NCBI GenBank assembly: GCA_002189035.1
Contig: NEEC01000009.1
Location: 3,162,001 to 3,226,000 of the forward strand
Origin: Utricularia gibba
Lineage: Eukaryota > Plantae > Magnoliophyta
Length of the DNA: 64,000 nucleotides
Direction of reading: 5' to 3'
Within the stretch, counting starts at the first letter, position 1; each line of letters opens with the position of its first letter. A program made the translations under genes and the position numbers. Below are positions 40,869 to 48,111 of the stretch, one piece after another. The notes below the pieces were generated by a model. That model saw nothing but the letters and a program-made list of their open reading frames with translations, searched no databases and was not told the DNA's origin.

Positions 40869-42791
40869 CTAGTTGCAGATTGCAAGTTTTCCCGTCGCCT
40901 CATCAGGAATCCCATAATCCACACTAAGTTCCCTCATGGGAGGAATATTTTCCATGGCAAACAGCATCAAACGAGGGAAGCATACATTGTTGTGATCGTA
41001 CAAAACAAGCTGCACCATCAGGTTTGGGCTTGTGCTATGGCTTATATAGCAAGCAACGTTCCTCATTCTTGACACATCCAGTGCATAATCCAAGGGAGGA
41101 ACTGATGGATGGGTTGGGGAAACATAGTCGGAGAATATCTTTGATATCTCTCCCCATTCCTTCCATCTCTTCACAAATCGATCAGGATGAATCAGATGAT
41201 CGCCATTCATTGTCATAATCTGAGCTTGCTCAGTGGTAAGAGCAACACCAGAGTATTCACATAGAAAAGAGCCCGCAGGAAGCAAATCCAATGATCTCAC
41301 TCCCCAACCAGTTTCCCTGGATCGAAACACTTCGAGACGGTATCTGACTCCCTTCTGTGTCACACGGTTTCTACAAGTTGGAGGGCAGTGGCAATGAGGT
41401 CCACATTCAAAAATCAATGGTTTCCCTCTCAAGAGAGTTCCATTCATATCATATACAAAACCACCACCATTTTTCATAAGACAAAAGCAGCCATCTCCGC
41501 ATACTCCAGAGCATTCACACCCTGTGCTACTTCCATTGCTATATACAAAGGGAGGGAAAACAGCTGAACTAAGATATTCATGATGGAGTGGATCATGATT
41601 ACCATCAACATCATTGTAGAACAAAATGGGCAAATTCTCCTTGTTCTTGGACAAGTCAAGAGAAACATAACCTGTGGGTCGGCCTTCAAGTGGGTGATCC
41701 CTTAGCCTTTCAGAAAACTTGAGGATAGTACTTCCCATCTCCCCCTGATTTTCAATCCTTACAAGTTTGAACTTGAAAACACCAAAACCAGATTTACCAA
41801 CATCGAACCACGTGTCAACTATCCTATATAAACCATCATAAACATAGACTTTACCCAGACCTCTTTTAAATCCTCGAATCACTCTTACCTCTATGCCATA
41901 GTTCATACTCCTCTCCAATGCCAAATTTCCGGACTCCAACTTCTGATGCACAACTTGTCTGCCATGTTTATCTTGCCCACCATGCCCAGTGTATAGTATC
42001 ACATCTCCTCCATCTTCATCATCTTCGTAACCTCCTGAGACAATAATGCTGGTAGCAATTGGTTCACCAGTCGAGCTCAGGTTAGCTGGGACATAATCAA
42101 TGCCTGCCTGGGGCTGCCCATGTAGCCCAACCACACAGAGCTCCATTCTATAAAAGAAAATATCACCAATGTGAATTCCAGGAATATCTCCCACGATCCT
42201 CTTCTCCCTGTTCAACCATAACCCGCTATGTCTCATCAAAGCTGCAGCCTTCAAGTCGCCCCTCGCTCTGCGATTTTTAAACATGTTGGAATTCTTAAGC
42301 TTTTCCTCCTCCGACGCGGTAAATACTCGCAGAGAGTCATGCAGCAAACGTGTCTTCCGAATTAATTCGCGAAAGTATCGCTGGTCCTCTGGTTTTAGGT
42401 CTGTGACTCTAACAAGCTCAGAAGAGCGCCCTTGAAACTTGACGCTACTCGAAAGCGTAATGCCGGTTTCCTCCAAGCTCGAAAACGGGACTATTGCTCG
42501 TGAATTTGGTTCAGATTCCGAGAAGGTGGCAGCATGTCCGTTTTTCGGAAGACGGTCAGTGAAGGCGGTGTGGAACATCTCTGAAATGCGGTAAAATTCA
42601 GAGCATAAATCGGCGTCCGCGAAGGAATCGCCAAGGGTGGAAGAAGGGTTAATGGGTTCATCAGATATGACGTCAGGCGGCCGCGTGAGCGCCTGAGAAT
42701 GCTCATCCACCGGCTCAAGTTTTGGCTGTTTGAACAACGGCGGCGGCTGAGGTAACCGATGCTCTTGTACTCCGACAAAACTCGAGCCCAT
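40869..42791 (-). CDS. SUVH9: SUVH2/SUVH9-type SRA-SET protein (Pol V recruitment in RdDM), intronless, 640 aa
   Basis: SRA/YDG (IVGDIPG..GLHGQPQAGIDY..SGGYEDDED), pre-SET Cys cluster, SET (TGWGVRS, RNVACYISHS, ELSVDY). No post-SET Cys cluster, ends LAICN. Confidence 0.93.
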   Translation of the reverse strand: MGSSFVGVQEHRLPQPPPLFKQPKLEPVDEHSQALTRPPDVISDEPINPSSTLGDSFADADLCSEFYRISEMFHTAFTDRLPKNGHAATFSESEPNSRAIVPFSSLEETGITLSSSVKFQGRSSELVRVTDLKPEDQRYFRELIRKTRLLHDSLRVFTASEEEKLKNSNMFKNRRARGDLKAAALMRHSGLWLNREKRIVGDIPGIHIGDIFFYRMELCVVGLHGQPQAGIDYVPANLSSTGEPIATSIIVSGGYEDDEDGGDVILYTGHGGQDKHGRQVVHQKLESGNLALERSMNYGIEVRVIRGFKRGLGKVYVYDGLYRIVDTWFDVGKSGFGVFKFKLVRIENQGEMGSTILKFSERLRDHPLEGRPTGYVSLDLSKNKENLPILFYNDVDGNHDPLHHEYLSSAVFPPFVYSNGSSTGCECSGVCGDGCFCLMKNGGGFVYDMNGTLLRGKPLIFECGPHCHCPPTCRNRVTQKGVRYRLEVFRSRETGWGVRSLDLLPAGSFLCEYSGVALTTEQAQIMTMNGDHLIHPDRFVKRWKEWGEISKIFSDYVSPTHPSVPPLDYALDVSRMRNVACYISHSTSPNLMVQLVLYDHNNVCFPRLMLFAMENIPPMRELSVDYGIPDEATGKLAICN

Positions 42792-43841: not shown

Positions 43842-45133
43842 TCAGAAAGCCCGCTTCAGAACAATCAGTGACACAACAACGACAGCCAGACCAAATATCT
43901 TCATTGCTTCGTCATAGATAGGTGAACTCCCATGAGCATCCGGATCGCTCGCTTTCCCCCCAAACAAGTTCTTGAAATAGTCGGAAAATGCATTCATCAT
44001 GCCAACCACGGCATTTTTTATCTTTTGAAAGAAGTCTTCATTGCTGGTGTTTGTATGCTCGTCAGCCTCTGGTGGATAATTCTCAGAAGCAGTTTCTGAT
44101 TGATTCGGTAAGGCATCATCAGAAACTGAATCTGCTTCTAGATTCACACCAGGGGTGGAGAGACCTTCAATACAAATGACATTGGTCAATTCGAGATCTT
44201 ACCGTGAGGTAAGACTAAAAGATTCAGTTTTGAATGGGTCCTTACTAGCTCCCTGCGACGCCAGATAACCCTGAAACTCCTGATTTTGTAACACCGCGTT
44301 CCAAACATTTGGGTCACAGGCAACTGAAGCAACAACATTCTACCAAAAGCCGTTGAGAGAGATACCATCATCGCATGAAATGAAGAAAGATTGATATAAC
44401 TAATCAATATTGTGGAGGGTTGTCGGGCAATGCTCCATTGAACAACTAAACGGAACACACCGACACTCTTAAGGTGAGAGAAGCTAGCAACTTTGACGCT
44501 TACAGTGAATAAAATGCTGCATAGTTCAGTGGAAAAAAAAAGATAAGCAGAGGGCAAATACCTTTGCCGCGGGGTTTTCACTTAGAAACCTGAATGCCAT
44601 AACAGCAGGAGCGGGTAACGCAGTCAACGGATCCAGATGCTGCGTGTTGGAAAGGGAGAGACGAGCAAAATCCCTATCAATCACTGATTCACCTTCACAG
44701 ACAAATGAATCATGGGCCCTGAAATATTGATTGAATTTTTATAAATTGTATCTTGACTATACAAAATTTAGAGTCCCTTAATTCGAAAGAAACCATGAGA
44801 TCGGTCACACCTCTCCCACGCAGCAGAAAGTTCAGAAGTGGCCTCCTCTGCTTCTTGGCGAGTCGGGACACCACCGAACACAACTCTGGGAATCAGATCC
44901 CCCGAAGCCTCTTCTTCCCCAGCAAAGACCCAATCTTCAAACTCGGAACCGGACCTAGAACCGATAGCCTCGGAATTCGAAGCCACAAGCTTCACATCCT
45001 CAGTCGCAGAAGCCACGGGACGAAGGGATACCGATCTCCTGACCACAGACGACAGCGGATGGTGATCCGCCGTGAATCCACGGATACTACCGCTCGCCAC
45101 CTTCGCCGCCGACCTCATCACTCCACCGCCCAT
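43842..45133 (-). CDS. Uncharacterised conserved plant protein (UCP012943-type), multi-exon
   Basis: MGGGVMRSAAKVA..FEDWVFAG..PRVVFGGVPTRQEAEEATSEL / ..AVMAFRFLSENPAAK / NVVASVACDPNVWNAVLQN / ..C-terminal TM IFGLAVVVVSLIVLKR. Confidence 0.85.
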
Positions 45134-45537
45134 GATCGGGAAGCCAAGGGCCGTGGATCAAGAAATGGATGTGAATCGTAATGACCAAGGAAATGAATAA
45201 ATATCCATCAGCACGGGGGAATAGGGATGCATAGCAACGGTCAATAAATACATTTTCCAACACTAAAAAAAATTTCGAAAATTAAGAAAATTTTGGAAGG
45301 ACATAATTTCTCAAAATTAATTTATAAAAGGGATTTTAATAAAAGAAAAATTACTAATTAACAATTTTAAATTTTTTTTTTTTTTTTTAAATAAAAAGCC
45401 ATAGGTATCACTCGCTCCCTCCGTCTGCGTGATCATGGTGATGTGTGTGCAGATTCAGACATGCACATGTTTCTGAACAACCATCCACTCTTGCTGATGT
45501 GCTTCTGAAAGAAGTGCTGCAAAGGCTCATATGCACG

Positions 45538-47339
45538 CTACGATCTTCTTCTCTTTAAGCCCCACCATCTCCAGCGCTGCTTCTCGCCTTCCTGTGGTCC
45601 CATTCGGCTTGCCTTTGCTCTGGCTTCGCTCAACCGTAATCCGAAGTCTTTCTTCCAGGCATCGAATTCATGTTTGAGTGTCTCAACTTCCTCCGGAGGC
45701 TTTAGAGCAGAGGGTGAATGATTCTGTTTGGCCTCAACAATGGCTTGAGGTTCATGATCGAGAGCTTGTTTTTGCTTCTCAAAGCCATTGGCAATGGATT
45801 TCGAAGCAGAAGCATTGTTTTCTCCAAACAGAATGTCCATGAATGTGACTGGCGAACGGGCTCTGTTCCTGTGTGTTCGTGGTTCATTTCCAGCATCCGC
45901 AGCATTCTTTTTTGCTGCATCCAAACTCATCTGCAGATGCGAAGGAAATGTCTAAGCTGAGTTACAACAGTTACAGGGGAAGGGAGAGAATTGTTTTACC
46001 TGTAGAAAATACATCTTCTTTTGCCACATCGCCTCCATGGCCTTCATCTTCGATTCAAGTTGATCAACTTGCTCCTTTAGAACTGCAACTTCCTTATCCT
46101 TTTCTTCAAGTGCTGCTTCTGCCATTATCACACGCTTTTGAAGTTCTTCGACAACCTCAGGTTGAGGAGGCACCACATCCTGCGCCTTTTACACACACAA
46201 AAGGAACCTATGATTCGCTGAACATTTCCTTTTGAGCCTTTTTACCTTAGAGACACCAACCTTGTAGGGTGGCGTTGTTAGGCTGTGTAGGCGAGTAAAA
46301 TGCTGCCGCCTTCTTGCCAAACATCCACGAATTACTGTACAGGTTCACTCAATGCAGGATAAGACCTCAGTGCCACAGTATTACTGCTTAATGAACCTTA
46401 CCTGACTGTATGAGAACCGCGGTTGCAACTAGCTGATGGTCCTGCTTATCATTATGTGACTTGTTACAATCGTCTGGCTTTCTCAAGCTTCGCCGGAACT
46501 CTTTCCGTGCCATTTCACCGCGCACATCTGCAGAGAAGCAGGGATTTCTTCAGACAAAGAAAGGGATGGAGACAAAAACTTAGCTTGCGTTCATCCTTAC
46601 AGGATTGCAATGCTGTCACCACTTCCTTCGCGTCATTAGAGTTGCAATGCTCGTCTAGGTTACCTTGAAAAGCAGTTTGTCGCACATCATTCTGTAAAGC
46701 ACCACCATGCTTGGGATCAAAGAACAAAAACTAGATGGGGAAACGGCCATTGCGAAGCAAGAAGTTACGGCAAGTCGTTTGAATACGAACTACACACAAA
46801 AATTGTGCTCCGAAAATAAAACACGCGAACACCGAATGTTGAATGTTCAGCTATCTATTTCCAGAACAAGCACCATCCAGTCTGTAATGTTCCACTATGT
46901 GCAACCCATTCCGTAAATGACGGCCAGGAAGACATGAAGAAGCAAAACGGGATCCGATGAAACAAGATTGACTTACCAAGAACTCGCTAGATCGGTTTTC
47001 AAGCCTGGAAATGCGGCCACCCATATCAGAAGCACTAGTGGATACGGGCTCCGGCGATTCCCCTGTCTCAATTTCCTTCGCCTGAAACCTAAAGATACTT
47101 TTTTCCAACCCATTGTTCAAATGCGAACTCACTTGACGCTCAGCAACGTCTAAATCTCCGGCCACCCGGCGCTTGGTCGAGGACGGAGGACGCGCCCGAG
47201 AATTAGGTCTGGGGCGAGCAGGAAGAGAGGGGGGTTTGCAACTTTCCGGGTTTTCGAACACCCCATCCGTCCGCTGGAGGGATACCAGCATTTCCTCCAA
47301 AGAGCTACGAAGAACAGGATCCGAGGAAATCGCAAGCAT
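45538..47339 (-). CDS. Headless class VIII myosin derivative (leader + 2 IQ + coiled coil + tail; no SH3-like or motor domain), 6 exons, about 421 aa
   Basis: Exons 47339-46977, 46709-46601, 46527-46402, 46334-46246, 46185-46000 and 45930-45538 join with GT-AG and matching phases, with no stop. Myosin VIII signatures: RSSLEEML..PPSLPARPRPNSRARPP, LQSYVRGEMARKEF, IQSVIRGCLARR, ELQKRVIMAEAAL..MKAMEAMWQKKM..LQMSL, FDAWKKDFGLRL..WWG. Confidence 0.85.
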
Positions 47340-48111
47340 AGTCCCCAGATTCACCAGAATAGGAAGCGGAAACCCCACATGAATGGGAGCAAATTAGAGA
47401 AACCAGGGACAGCGAAGTGGGAAGCATGCTCGCCACTTAAAAGCATAATCTTTGTCACGTCAACACAAGGAGGCAGTGGGGAGGGGACAACAACAAAACC
47501 CGAGTTTCAGAGCGAACGTCAGGAAATGAAAAAGAAAATCAGCCATGGCTGGCGCTTCCAGTCGGAACCGTTCCGGATTCTCCAACATAATAATAAATTA
47601 TTCTTCATATTTCTAATTTATGTGGGACCCGTTTAAAATGGCAAAACGCATGGGCGCAGGAGTAATTATCCCATGGTACGCGGCCCACGAACCTCACATG
47701 GTAACCCTAGAAATTCGTATCCTTTCTTCCCCCCACACCTCACAATAAAAATATTTTGCTTATTGAAATGAAATTTACTGTGTTGCGTTTTATGTGTGTA
47801 TATTTAAATAATTAAATACTTGTATGAGAATTTGATGCTTTGCTTAAGCTCGAGAATAAAATTTCTATGGCAAGTGCTGATGGGCCGGGAACATGCCAAA
47901 ATTCGTAATAAATTTGGAGTCAACAAAAGATATTTGCGAGGAGAAGGAAGCAGCAAGGTAAATAATAAGAAATTTTACTTTTACTGCGGGGTAATCATTC
48001 TGCCATGTGGGGGGATTGGGATGCATGTCAGACTTGTCCTGGTTAATGAATGGAACGATTCACGGTCGCCGCCGGCGTACCGGGGTGGGGTTCGCTGCCG
48101 CCGCCGTTCAA

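Follow-up and report, generated by a model that had tools for sequence, protein, structure and literature searches.

Class VIII myosins function at the plasma membrane, at plasmodesmata and at the cell plate, and are usually studied via over-expressed dominant-negative tails. Naturally motor-less, or headless, plant myosins have been described in class XI: a 2013 review names two headless types only, Myo11E2 and Myo11E4 (PMC3850447), and a headless class XI transcript is also described from maize (PMC3935558). Here, we describe a gene of Utricularia gibba that joins the N-terminal leader of a class VIII myosin directly to its neck and tail. The gene lies on the minus strand of a 64,000-nucleotide (nt) stretch of contig NEEC01000009.1 (GCA_002189035.1, positions 3,162,001 to 3,226,000), hereafter the window, and spliced RNA contigs define six exons running from an ATG at 47339 to a stop codon at 45540-45538. 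With a probability of roughly 0.6, we regard it as a stand-alone, expressed, protein-coding headless derivative of a type-B (ATM2-like) class VIII myosin, whose product would serve as a motor-less competitor or adaptor.

The described headless systems share several features with this locus. Like the window gene, Arabidopsis Myo11E2 (HDK, headless derivative of XI-K) and Myo11E4 of the Poales are stand-alone, transcribed genes that derive from a duplicated myosin, have lost the motor exons and have kept intron positions, and Myo11E4 likewise retains some IQ motifs. However, class XI headless tails have a DIL cargo domain, whereas the window gene has a class VIII coiled coil followed by a double-tryptophan (WW) tail; the class XI headless genes also gained or lost 5′ exons, whereas the window gene keeps the original first exon, which encodes the class VIII N-terminal extension (MyTH8 leader), together with the promoter side. 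Engineered class VIII tails resemble the window protein in consisting of neck or coiled coil plus tail, at ~40 kDa and without a motor (PMC4199776; PMC3203191), but they are artificial and over-expressed, whereas the window protein is natural, adds the MyTH8 leader and would be made from its own promoter at a modest level. Mammalian headless myosin X (PMC6345916) is also natural and motor-less, keeps neck and tail and localizes through its tail; it differs in being an animal protein with unrelated tail domains that arises as an alternative-promoter isoform of the same gene.

The initial annotation of this DNA, made from the letters alone, knew of no described headless class VIII lineage. Descriptions of a natural headless class VIII gene were indeed absent from the searched literature, which omits most subscription journals, but the architecture itself is already annotated in many angiosperms, and the gene is no isolated case. 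At the level of the predicted product, the window gene extends headless myosin derivatives, class XI in the searched plant literature, to class VIII.

To define the gene, contigs of four RNA runs were placed on 45300-47700, and contigs were also compared at 80% likeness. Five of eight RNA data sets of the same organism contain the headless-gene region, and transcription and splicing were observed in five runs (X1-X5) of three studies. The RNA joints fall at 46977/46691, 46601/46527, 46402/46334, 46261/46185 and 46000/45930; the first of these is present in contigs of X1, X2, X3, X4 and X5, and a single X5 contig of 1500 nt covers all six exons from 47504 to 45437. All five introns are canonical GT..AG and are spliced in RNA, and the mRNA built from the RNA-defined exons carries an intact open reading frame (ORF) of 410 amino acids (aa) without an internal stop.

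These data preserve the outline of the gene as first annotated and change one of its exons. Six exons, GT..AG introns and a stop-free ORF had been proposed, and the joints 46527/46402, 46334/46261, 46185/46000 and 45930 agree exactly with the RNA contigs (four of five), but the bounds of exon 2 and the length of ~421 aa were wrong. Exon 2 had been set at 46709-46664, beginning with HGGALQ, behind an intron 1 of 267 bp; in all four runs placed, the RNA shows 46691-46601, beginning with NDVRQ, behind an intron of 285 nt, and the contigs contain 46977/46691 in place of the expected 46977/46709 junction. The exon set as first claimed remains in frame on paper when rebuilt, giving 395 aa, and is supported by no RNA contig.

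Exon by exon, the transcript reads as a class VIII myosin from which the middle has been removed. A 5′ untranslated leader of at least 165 nt (47340..47504; the X5 contig reaches 47504, an X1 contig 47480) precedes the coding part of exon 1 (46977..47339, 121 aa), which corresponds, as originally annotated, to the myosin VIII leader: it contains SSLEEML (residues 12-18, 47306-47286) and PPSLPARP (residues 36-43, 47234-47211) and shows 52% identity to the leader of Striga. Beyond intron 1 (46692..46976), exon 2 (46601..46691, 91 nt) is the first post-motor exon; it opens with NDVRQTAFQG, for which the full-length counterpart has EDVRRQVLQG, and closes with the first half of IQ motif 1. Exon 3 (46402..46527, 126 nt) supplies the second half of that motif, a linker and the first half of IQ motif 2, which is completed in exon 4 (46261..46334, 74 nt). 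IQ motif 1 (LQSYVRGEMAR, residues 149-159, 46610-46505) is thus intact across the exon 2/3 junction, and IQ motif 2 reads IQSVIRGCLAR (residues 191-201, 46411-46312). Exon 5 (46000..46185, 62 aa) encodes a coiled-coil segment, and exon 6 (45538..45930, 130 aa plus the stop codon) a variable linker and then the conserved class VIII C-terminal block with WKKDF (residues 372-376, 45657-45643) and the WW motif WRWWG (residues 400-404, 45573-45559). The end of the protein is basic and tryptophan-rich (14 K/R and 4 W within the last 50 aa), and a 3′ untranslated region followed by an A-rich run occupies 45402..45537, the X2 and X3 contigs ending at 45402. Motif search and alignment to Striga confirm the annotated retention of two IQ motifs, coiled coil and WKKDF..WW tail.

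Comparison with a full-length myosin locates the missing part precisely. By BLAST, a Striga asiatica myosin-like protein of 1,169 aa aligns over its residues 3-56 with residues 1-56 of the window protein (52% identity) and over its residues 843-1169 with residues 121-409 (37.5% identity), the alignment skipping from residue 56 to residue 843 of the full-length myosin. SH3_VIII-1_N, Myosin_head and IQ domains are all present in this reference protein. A single exon of its gene encodes the leader (residues 1-131), and the post-motor exon extends from Q839 ('QISPLEDVRRQVLQG', QISPLE) to S881 ('..TLQS|Y'); the end of window exon 1 is homologous to the end of the Striga leader exon, and window exon 2 stops at the corresponding '..LQS|Y'. 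A tblastn search of the whole 64-kb window with full-length class VIII myosin returned leader and tail matches only and no fragment of the motor domain, and the SH3-like domain is absent as well, PF25369 (SH3_VIII-1_N) being present in full-length relatives and lacking in headless proteins. The annotated absence of the SH3-like and motor regions from the DNA is thereby borne out, as is the description of the deletion as clean, exon-level and in frame.

Myosin classes are defined on the motor domain (PMC3850447), which this mRNA replaces by a direct joint between leader exon and post-motor exon; the class assignment here refers to the traits outside the motor. Class VIII is described with a MyTH8 extension, neck, coiled coil and WW motif, and the window motifs fit this description (PMC3850447). 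The N-terminal MyTH8 extension is encoded by a single exon, exon 1; the coiled coil and the C-terminal double tryptophan are present in a tail that aligns to the last 327 residues of the Striga myosin VIII; and two IQ motifs match [FILV]Qxxx[RK]Gxxx[RK], versus three to four in class VIII type B. The locus equally has the features of a headless derivative, with motor exons gone from the DNA, flanking exons and intron positions kept, and its own spliced ORF transcript.

When the exons were scanned one by one against Pfam, no family passed the threshold; the IQ motifs cross exon junctions, and the MyTH8 and WW tail regions have no Pfam hit. Exon 5 produced weak sub-cut-off matches to coiled-coil families (CC2-LZ, E 5.8e-5), and the same scan gave no match to a DIL domain, the tail being of class VIII. 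An exhaustive search of exon 6 against 1.84 billion representatives recovered 99 relatives, including proteins of 1,050-1,380 aa matched at their C-terminus. The best identity among them was 48%, the window's own protein and close orthologs being missing from the protein collections, and a protein atlas matched only unnamed plant clusters and generic coiled-coil families. One 966-aa protein (P0003) aligned with the class VIII tail block at nine distinct places along its length and apparently carries a tandemly repeated tail.

The architecture shows how the motor was lost. A duplicate type-B class VIII copy lost all exons between the MyTH8 leader exon and the first post-motor exon, the reading frame being kept because both flanking introns are phase 0; once the SH3-like and motor exons were gone, a hybrid of the two flanking introns remained as intron 1. 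The AG at 46711-46710, first proposed as the acceptor of exon 2, now lies inside intron 1 and is in use in no contig. Because the Striga full-length exon starts at Q839, this AG is, on comparative grounds, the ancestral 3′ splice site; it is followed by an 18-nt in-frame remnant (46709-46692) reading HGGALQ, where the full-length protein has QISPLE, and the acceptor later moved 18 nt downstream. Use of the ancestral acceptor could yield a 416-aa isoform, of which none was seen in the RNA contigs.

A second headless class VIII transcript bears on the age of this structure. At 80% likeness, contigs of 1,744-1,775 nt in X1, X4, X5 and X7 match window positions 45512-47339, with identities to the window mRNA of 79% in exon 1, 86% in exon 3, 88% in exon 5 and 83% at the end of exon 6. 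The matches follow the same exon order and leave no room for a motor. Length differences from the window mRNA are +15, -15, +54 and +9 nt, and one accession shows a further 6-nt difference between the paralogs; all are multiples of three. Over 45 codons with fully listed differences, non-synonymous divergence (dN) is 0.19 and synonymous divergence (dS) 0.40, a ratio of 0.48, and the block PPSLPARPxPNSRARPPSS is almost unchanged. Since the paralogs combine the same architecture with appreciable divergence, the headless state predates a duplication of appreciable age, and by this comparison both headless copies have kept their reading frame since then.

Motor-less class VIII proteins also occur far beyond Utricularia. 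The initial annotation had called for a search for the same leader-to-IQ fusion in related genomes, and this fusion was found in many angiosperms: many matches, 320-600 aa in length, align with the window protein over their full extent and consist of the leader plus Striga residues from ~835-844 onward, while a second headless type combines the leader with Striga residues from ~961 onward and is missing the neck too. Among asterids, they include Apium graveolens (four RefSeq isoforms, 425-427 aa), Salvia divinorum, S. splendens, S. miltiorrhiza, S. hispanica, Striga hermonthica, Solanum lycopersicum, S. dulcamara, S. stenotomum, Capsicum, Cornus florida, Nyssa, Bertholletia, Actinidia, Camellia and Ilex; among monocots, Typha, Zingiber, Ensete, Iris and Dioscorea. 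Several of these proteins derive from transcript assemblies. Databases label them 'myosin-1/2/3-like' or hypothetical, and the precomputed Pfam content of the annotated ones is IQ only.

Annotated examples include proteins of Salvia divinorum (403 and 446 aa), Cornus florida (474), Solanum lycopersicum (417), Apium graveolens (426) and Typha (378 and 600). Like the window gene, they join the leader exon to an exon starting near full-length residue 839, and in the 403-aa Salvia protein the junction falls at residue 121, as in the window protein; they differ in sharing only 27-35% identity with it. Three headless loci were checked in DNA, two of Salvia divinorum spanning 1.95 and 2.7 kb (L002 10001-11951; L004 10001-12716) and one of Cornus florida spanning 8.7 kb with an intron 1 of 5.4 kb (L005 10001-18698). 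None contains N runs, in each the leader exon is followed by the neck exon, and no motor match was found within 10 kb on either side. Nine headless proteins of distantly related plants have in common invariant residues of the leader (S, E, M, L, then PPxLPxRPxSxxRxP) and of the tail.

To place the window protein among these relatives, we reconstructed a tree of the neck-to-tail region with IQ-TREE (LG+C20) from 68 rows, comprising 30 headless proteins, 34 full-length proteins, three uncertain ones and the window protein; type-A full-length tails, returned neither by the exhaustive tail search nor by the headless profile, are absent from it. The tree requires nine changes of headless/full-length label, of which the starred branches force at least six, and gene conversion by local full-length paralogs could mimic such repeated origins. 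One headless-only clade (support 100/100) unites Cornus, Nyssa, Ilex, Bertholletia, Actinidia, Solanaceae and Striga hermonthica, with an internal branching that broadly tracks plant orders. The window protein falls outside it, inside the core-Lamiales 'myosin-2' (type-B) clade (support 100/99), with its position within that clade left unresolved.

Forcing the window protein into the asterid-wide headless clade, a group named only after the tree was seen, costs 32.9 log-likelihood units and is rejected (approximately unbiased test, p = 0.0024). Forcing it together with the Salvia headless genes was not rejected and scored better than the quick tree; both are long branches, and the grouping is without support in the careful (LG+C20) tree. 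The sister of the window protein is a partial Genlisea aurea protein, EPS62979 (support 100/99), with which it has in common the unusual ending RMG..RWxWWGLKxRR. The Genlisea contig breaks off 69 nt upstream of this match, so the head is not covered, and its neighbouring Sec23/24 gene is absent from the window, which leaves no synteny between the two. The placement suggests that the window gene most likely belongs to a headless lineage specific to Lentibulariaceae, with Genlisea as sister and with a second expressed paralog.

A broader reading of this distribution is that motor-less class VIII proteins form a recurrent, partly ancient family of regulators, made up of the asterid clade, with members in tomato, potato, pepper, kiwifruit and Brazil nut, and of younger independent origins that include the Lentibulariaceae pair, in which leader and tail would be selected without the motor. 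The younger origins may all share the exon-1-to-neck junction. We advance this view tentatively, rating it slightly below even odds.

Several observations bear, in either direction, on whether a protein is maintained at the window locus. Contig depth of the paralog is 2-6 times that of the window gene, contig depth being a poor measure of expression. Relative to the Genlisea fragment (183 codons), dN is 0.40-0.44 and dS 1.2-2.1 (saturated), and the resulting low ratio of 0.21-0.35 could partly date from a full-length ancestor, the Genlisea contig being cut. Between the X5 accession and the window, 12 non-synonymous and four synonymous changes (16 coding sites, from the 17 of 23 differences that are listed) yield 0.86, a value that neutrality could produce. 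The terminal branch of the window protein measures 1.17 against a median of 0.27, about four times as long, and 13 of 49 deeply conserved tail positions (27%) have been replaced. At positions where core-Lamiales full-length tails agree, the retention of ancestral residues falls from 73% in deeply conserved columns (conserved to ferns) through 66% in intermediate columns to 48% in shallow ones; this is the trend expected, but the deep-versus-rest contrast is not significant (p = 0.11). Structurally, the third or fourth IQ motif of type-B myosins is degenerate here, with degeneracy at the first IQ position of the full-length protein, and the exon 5 coiled coil lacks one heptad (7 aa) relative to the Genlisea fragment and full-length myosins. 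A low-depth X7 contig carries an extra T in an A6/T6 run at 45907 in exon 6, which would be a frameshift if real; it represents either an assembly error or a frameshift allele of another accession. Two upstream ATGs in the 5′ leader could limit translation of the headless ORF.

Such signs would suit a transcribed relic, in which the motor was lost, the old promoter is still active and the ORF is drifting, the loss or relaxation being recent and the abundant paralog keeping any function. In favour of this are the between-accession ratio, the very long terminal branch, the replaced conserved residues, the lower contig depth and the possible 1-nt insertion allele in X7. Yet the window copy has no stop or frameshift, and its five GT..AG introns are spliced at sites in use. 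Moreover, paralogs separated by a dS of ~0.4 both keep the exon order and differ in length by multiples of three only, the conserved leader and WW motifs are kept, and ratios between copies are 0.21-0.48, versus 0.86 between accessions. We consider the relic unlikely, although it is the strongest of the alternatives. The contention of the initial annotation that the gene is selected rather than decaying receives moderate support from the in-frame indels and the ratios between copies, and is qualified by the ratio between accessions, the long branch and the replaced tail residues. We read the comparisons as long-term maintenance of frame and motifs, combined with relaxed or fast-changing selection on the window copy; constraint is moderate rather than strong, and the lineage evolves fast.

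What the protein would do can be read from its architecture, which comprises the MyTH8 leader, two canonical IQ motifs, a coiled coil and the WW tail, without SH3-like domain, ATPase or actin-binding site. The IQ motifs would bind calmodulin or light chains, and the coiled coil would pair with itself, with the headless paralog or with a full-length class VIII myosin, although the missing heptad could alter the choice of partner. The protein would occupy the partners or membrane sites of tail and leader and would therefore behave as a motor-less competitor or adaptor, as over-expressed class VIII tails do. Such tails, at ~40 kDa, inhibit through cargo sequestration, through dead heterodimers with endogenous myosin, or both (PMC4199776). 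By analogy with them, a competitor or adaptor role is the most likely one for the predicted protein.

Alternatively, the gene might encode a neofunctionalized scaffold that works independently of full-length myosin and without competing with the motor, as a calmodulin-regulated adaptor for membranes or for SH3 ligands that uses the PPxLPxRP leader and the basic WW tail. The invariance of SSLExML and PPxLPxRPxSxxRxP in the nine distant headless proteins suggests a motor-independent leader function, deletion of the coiled-coil heptad could disfavour pairing with full-length partners, and the fast sequence evolution would fit as well. However, tail and coiled coil are still recognizably of the full-length type, and the present data do not separate a scaffold from a competitor. 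We rate the scaffold somewhat below even the relic.

An RNA-level role, or a non-productive by-product whose ORF is irrelevant, as proposed for the short maize Opaque1 transcript, is much less plausible. The upstream ATGs (47446 and ~47430, region 47427-47446, from the ORF listing of the mRNA) would point that way, and the headless O1 protein of maize was undetectable (PMC3935558); against this stand the exclusively in-frame indels relative to the paralog, the ratio below 1 between copies and a protein architecture kept across many plant orders. The frame of one of these upstream ATGs overlaps the main start codon. Finally, an assembly collapse or exon skipping, with motor exons truly lying between 46977 and 46691, can practically be set aside, as contigs of five runs from three studies join these positions at GT..AG and none carries motor sequence, the paralog has the same structure, the 64 kb contain no motor match, and the Salvia and Cornus headless loci are gap-free and without motor exons.

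The surroundings of the gene are compact. Introns other than intron 1 are on the scale of 67-75 nt and intergenic gaps measure a few hundred bases; the next ORF (44768-45133, minus strand) begins only ~270 bases beyond the 3′ end of the headless gene, in keeping with a very compact genome. Nine neighbouring ORFs of 93-138 aa (43.8-54.4 kb) gave no Pfam match. A single-exon SUVH9/SUVH2-like SET-domain gene of 640 aa (Pre-SET, SET and SRA-YDG; 40869-42791, minus strand) is located 2.7 kb behind the stop codon of the headless gene; its best matches are from Lamiales (Perilla, Genlisea) at up to 73% identity, and no SUVH9 gene was found within 10 kb of the headless genes of Salvia and Cornus. In addition, 39 bases at 47272-47310, encoding the SSLEEML..LQR motif, are matched by X1, X4 and X5 contigs with unlike sequence on either side, presumably transcripts of other, full-length class VIII paralogs with a conserved leader motif.

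For the window alone, the claim is the more modest one of a single fast-evolving, expressed member with a putative function. For the family, the repeated loss of the same exon block clearly illustrates how domains can be lost convergently once genes or genomes have been duplicated, and the presence of members in transformable crops (tomato, potato, pepper, tea and kiwifruit) makes direct tests feasible. If these genes are translated, plants would possess a brake or adaptor of their own for the class VIII motor, the results obtained with engineered tails would gain a physiological counterpart, and the poorly understood MyTH8 extension would be credited with a function that can be separated from the motor.

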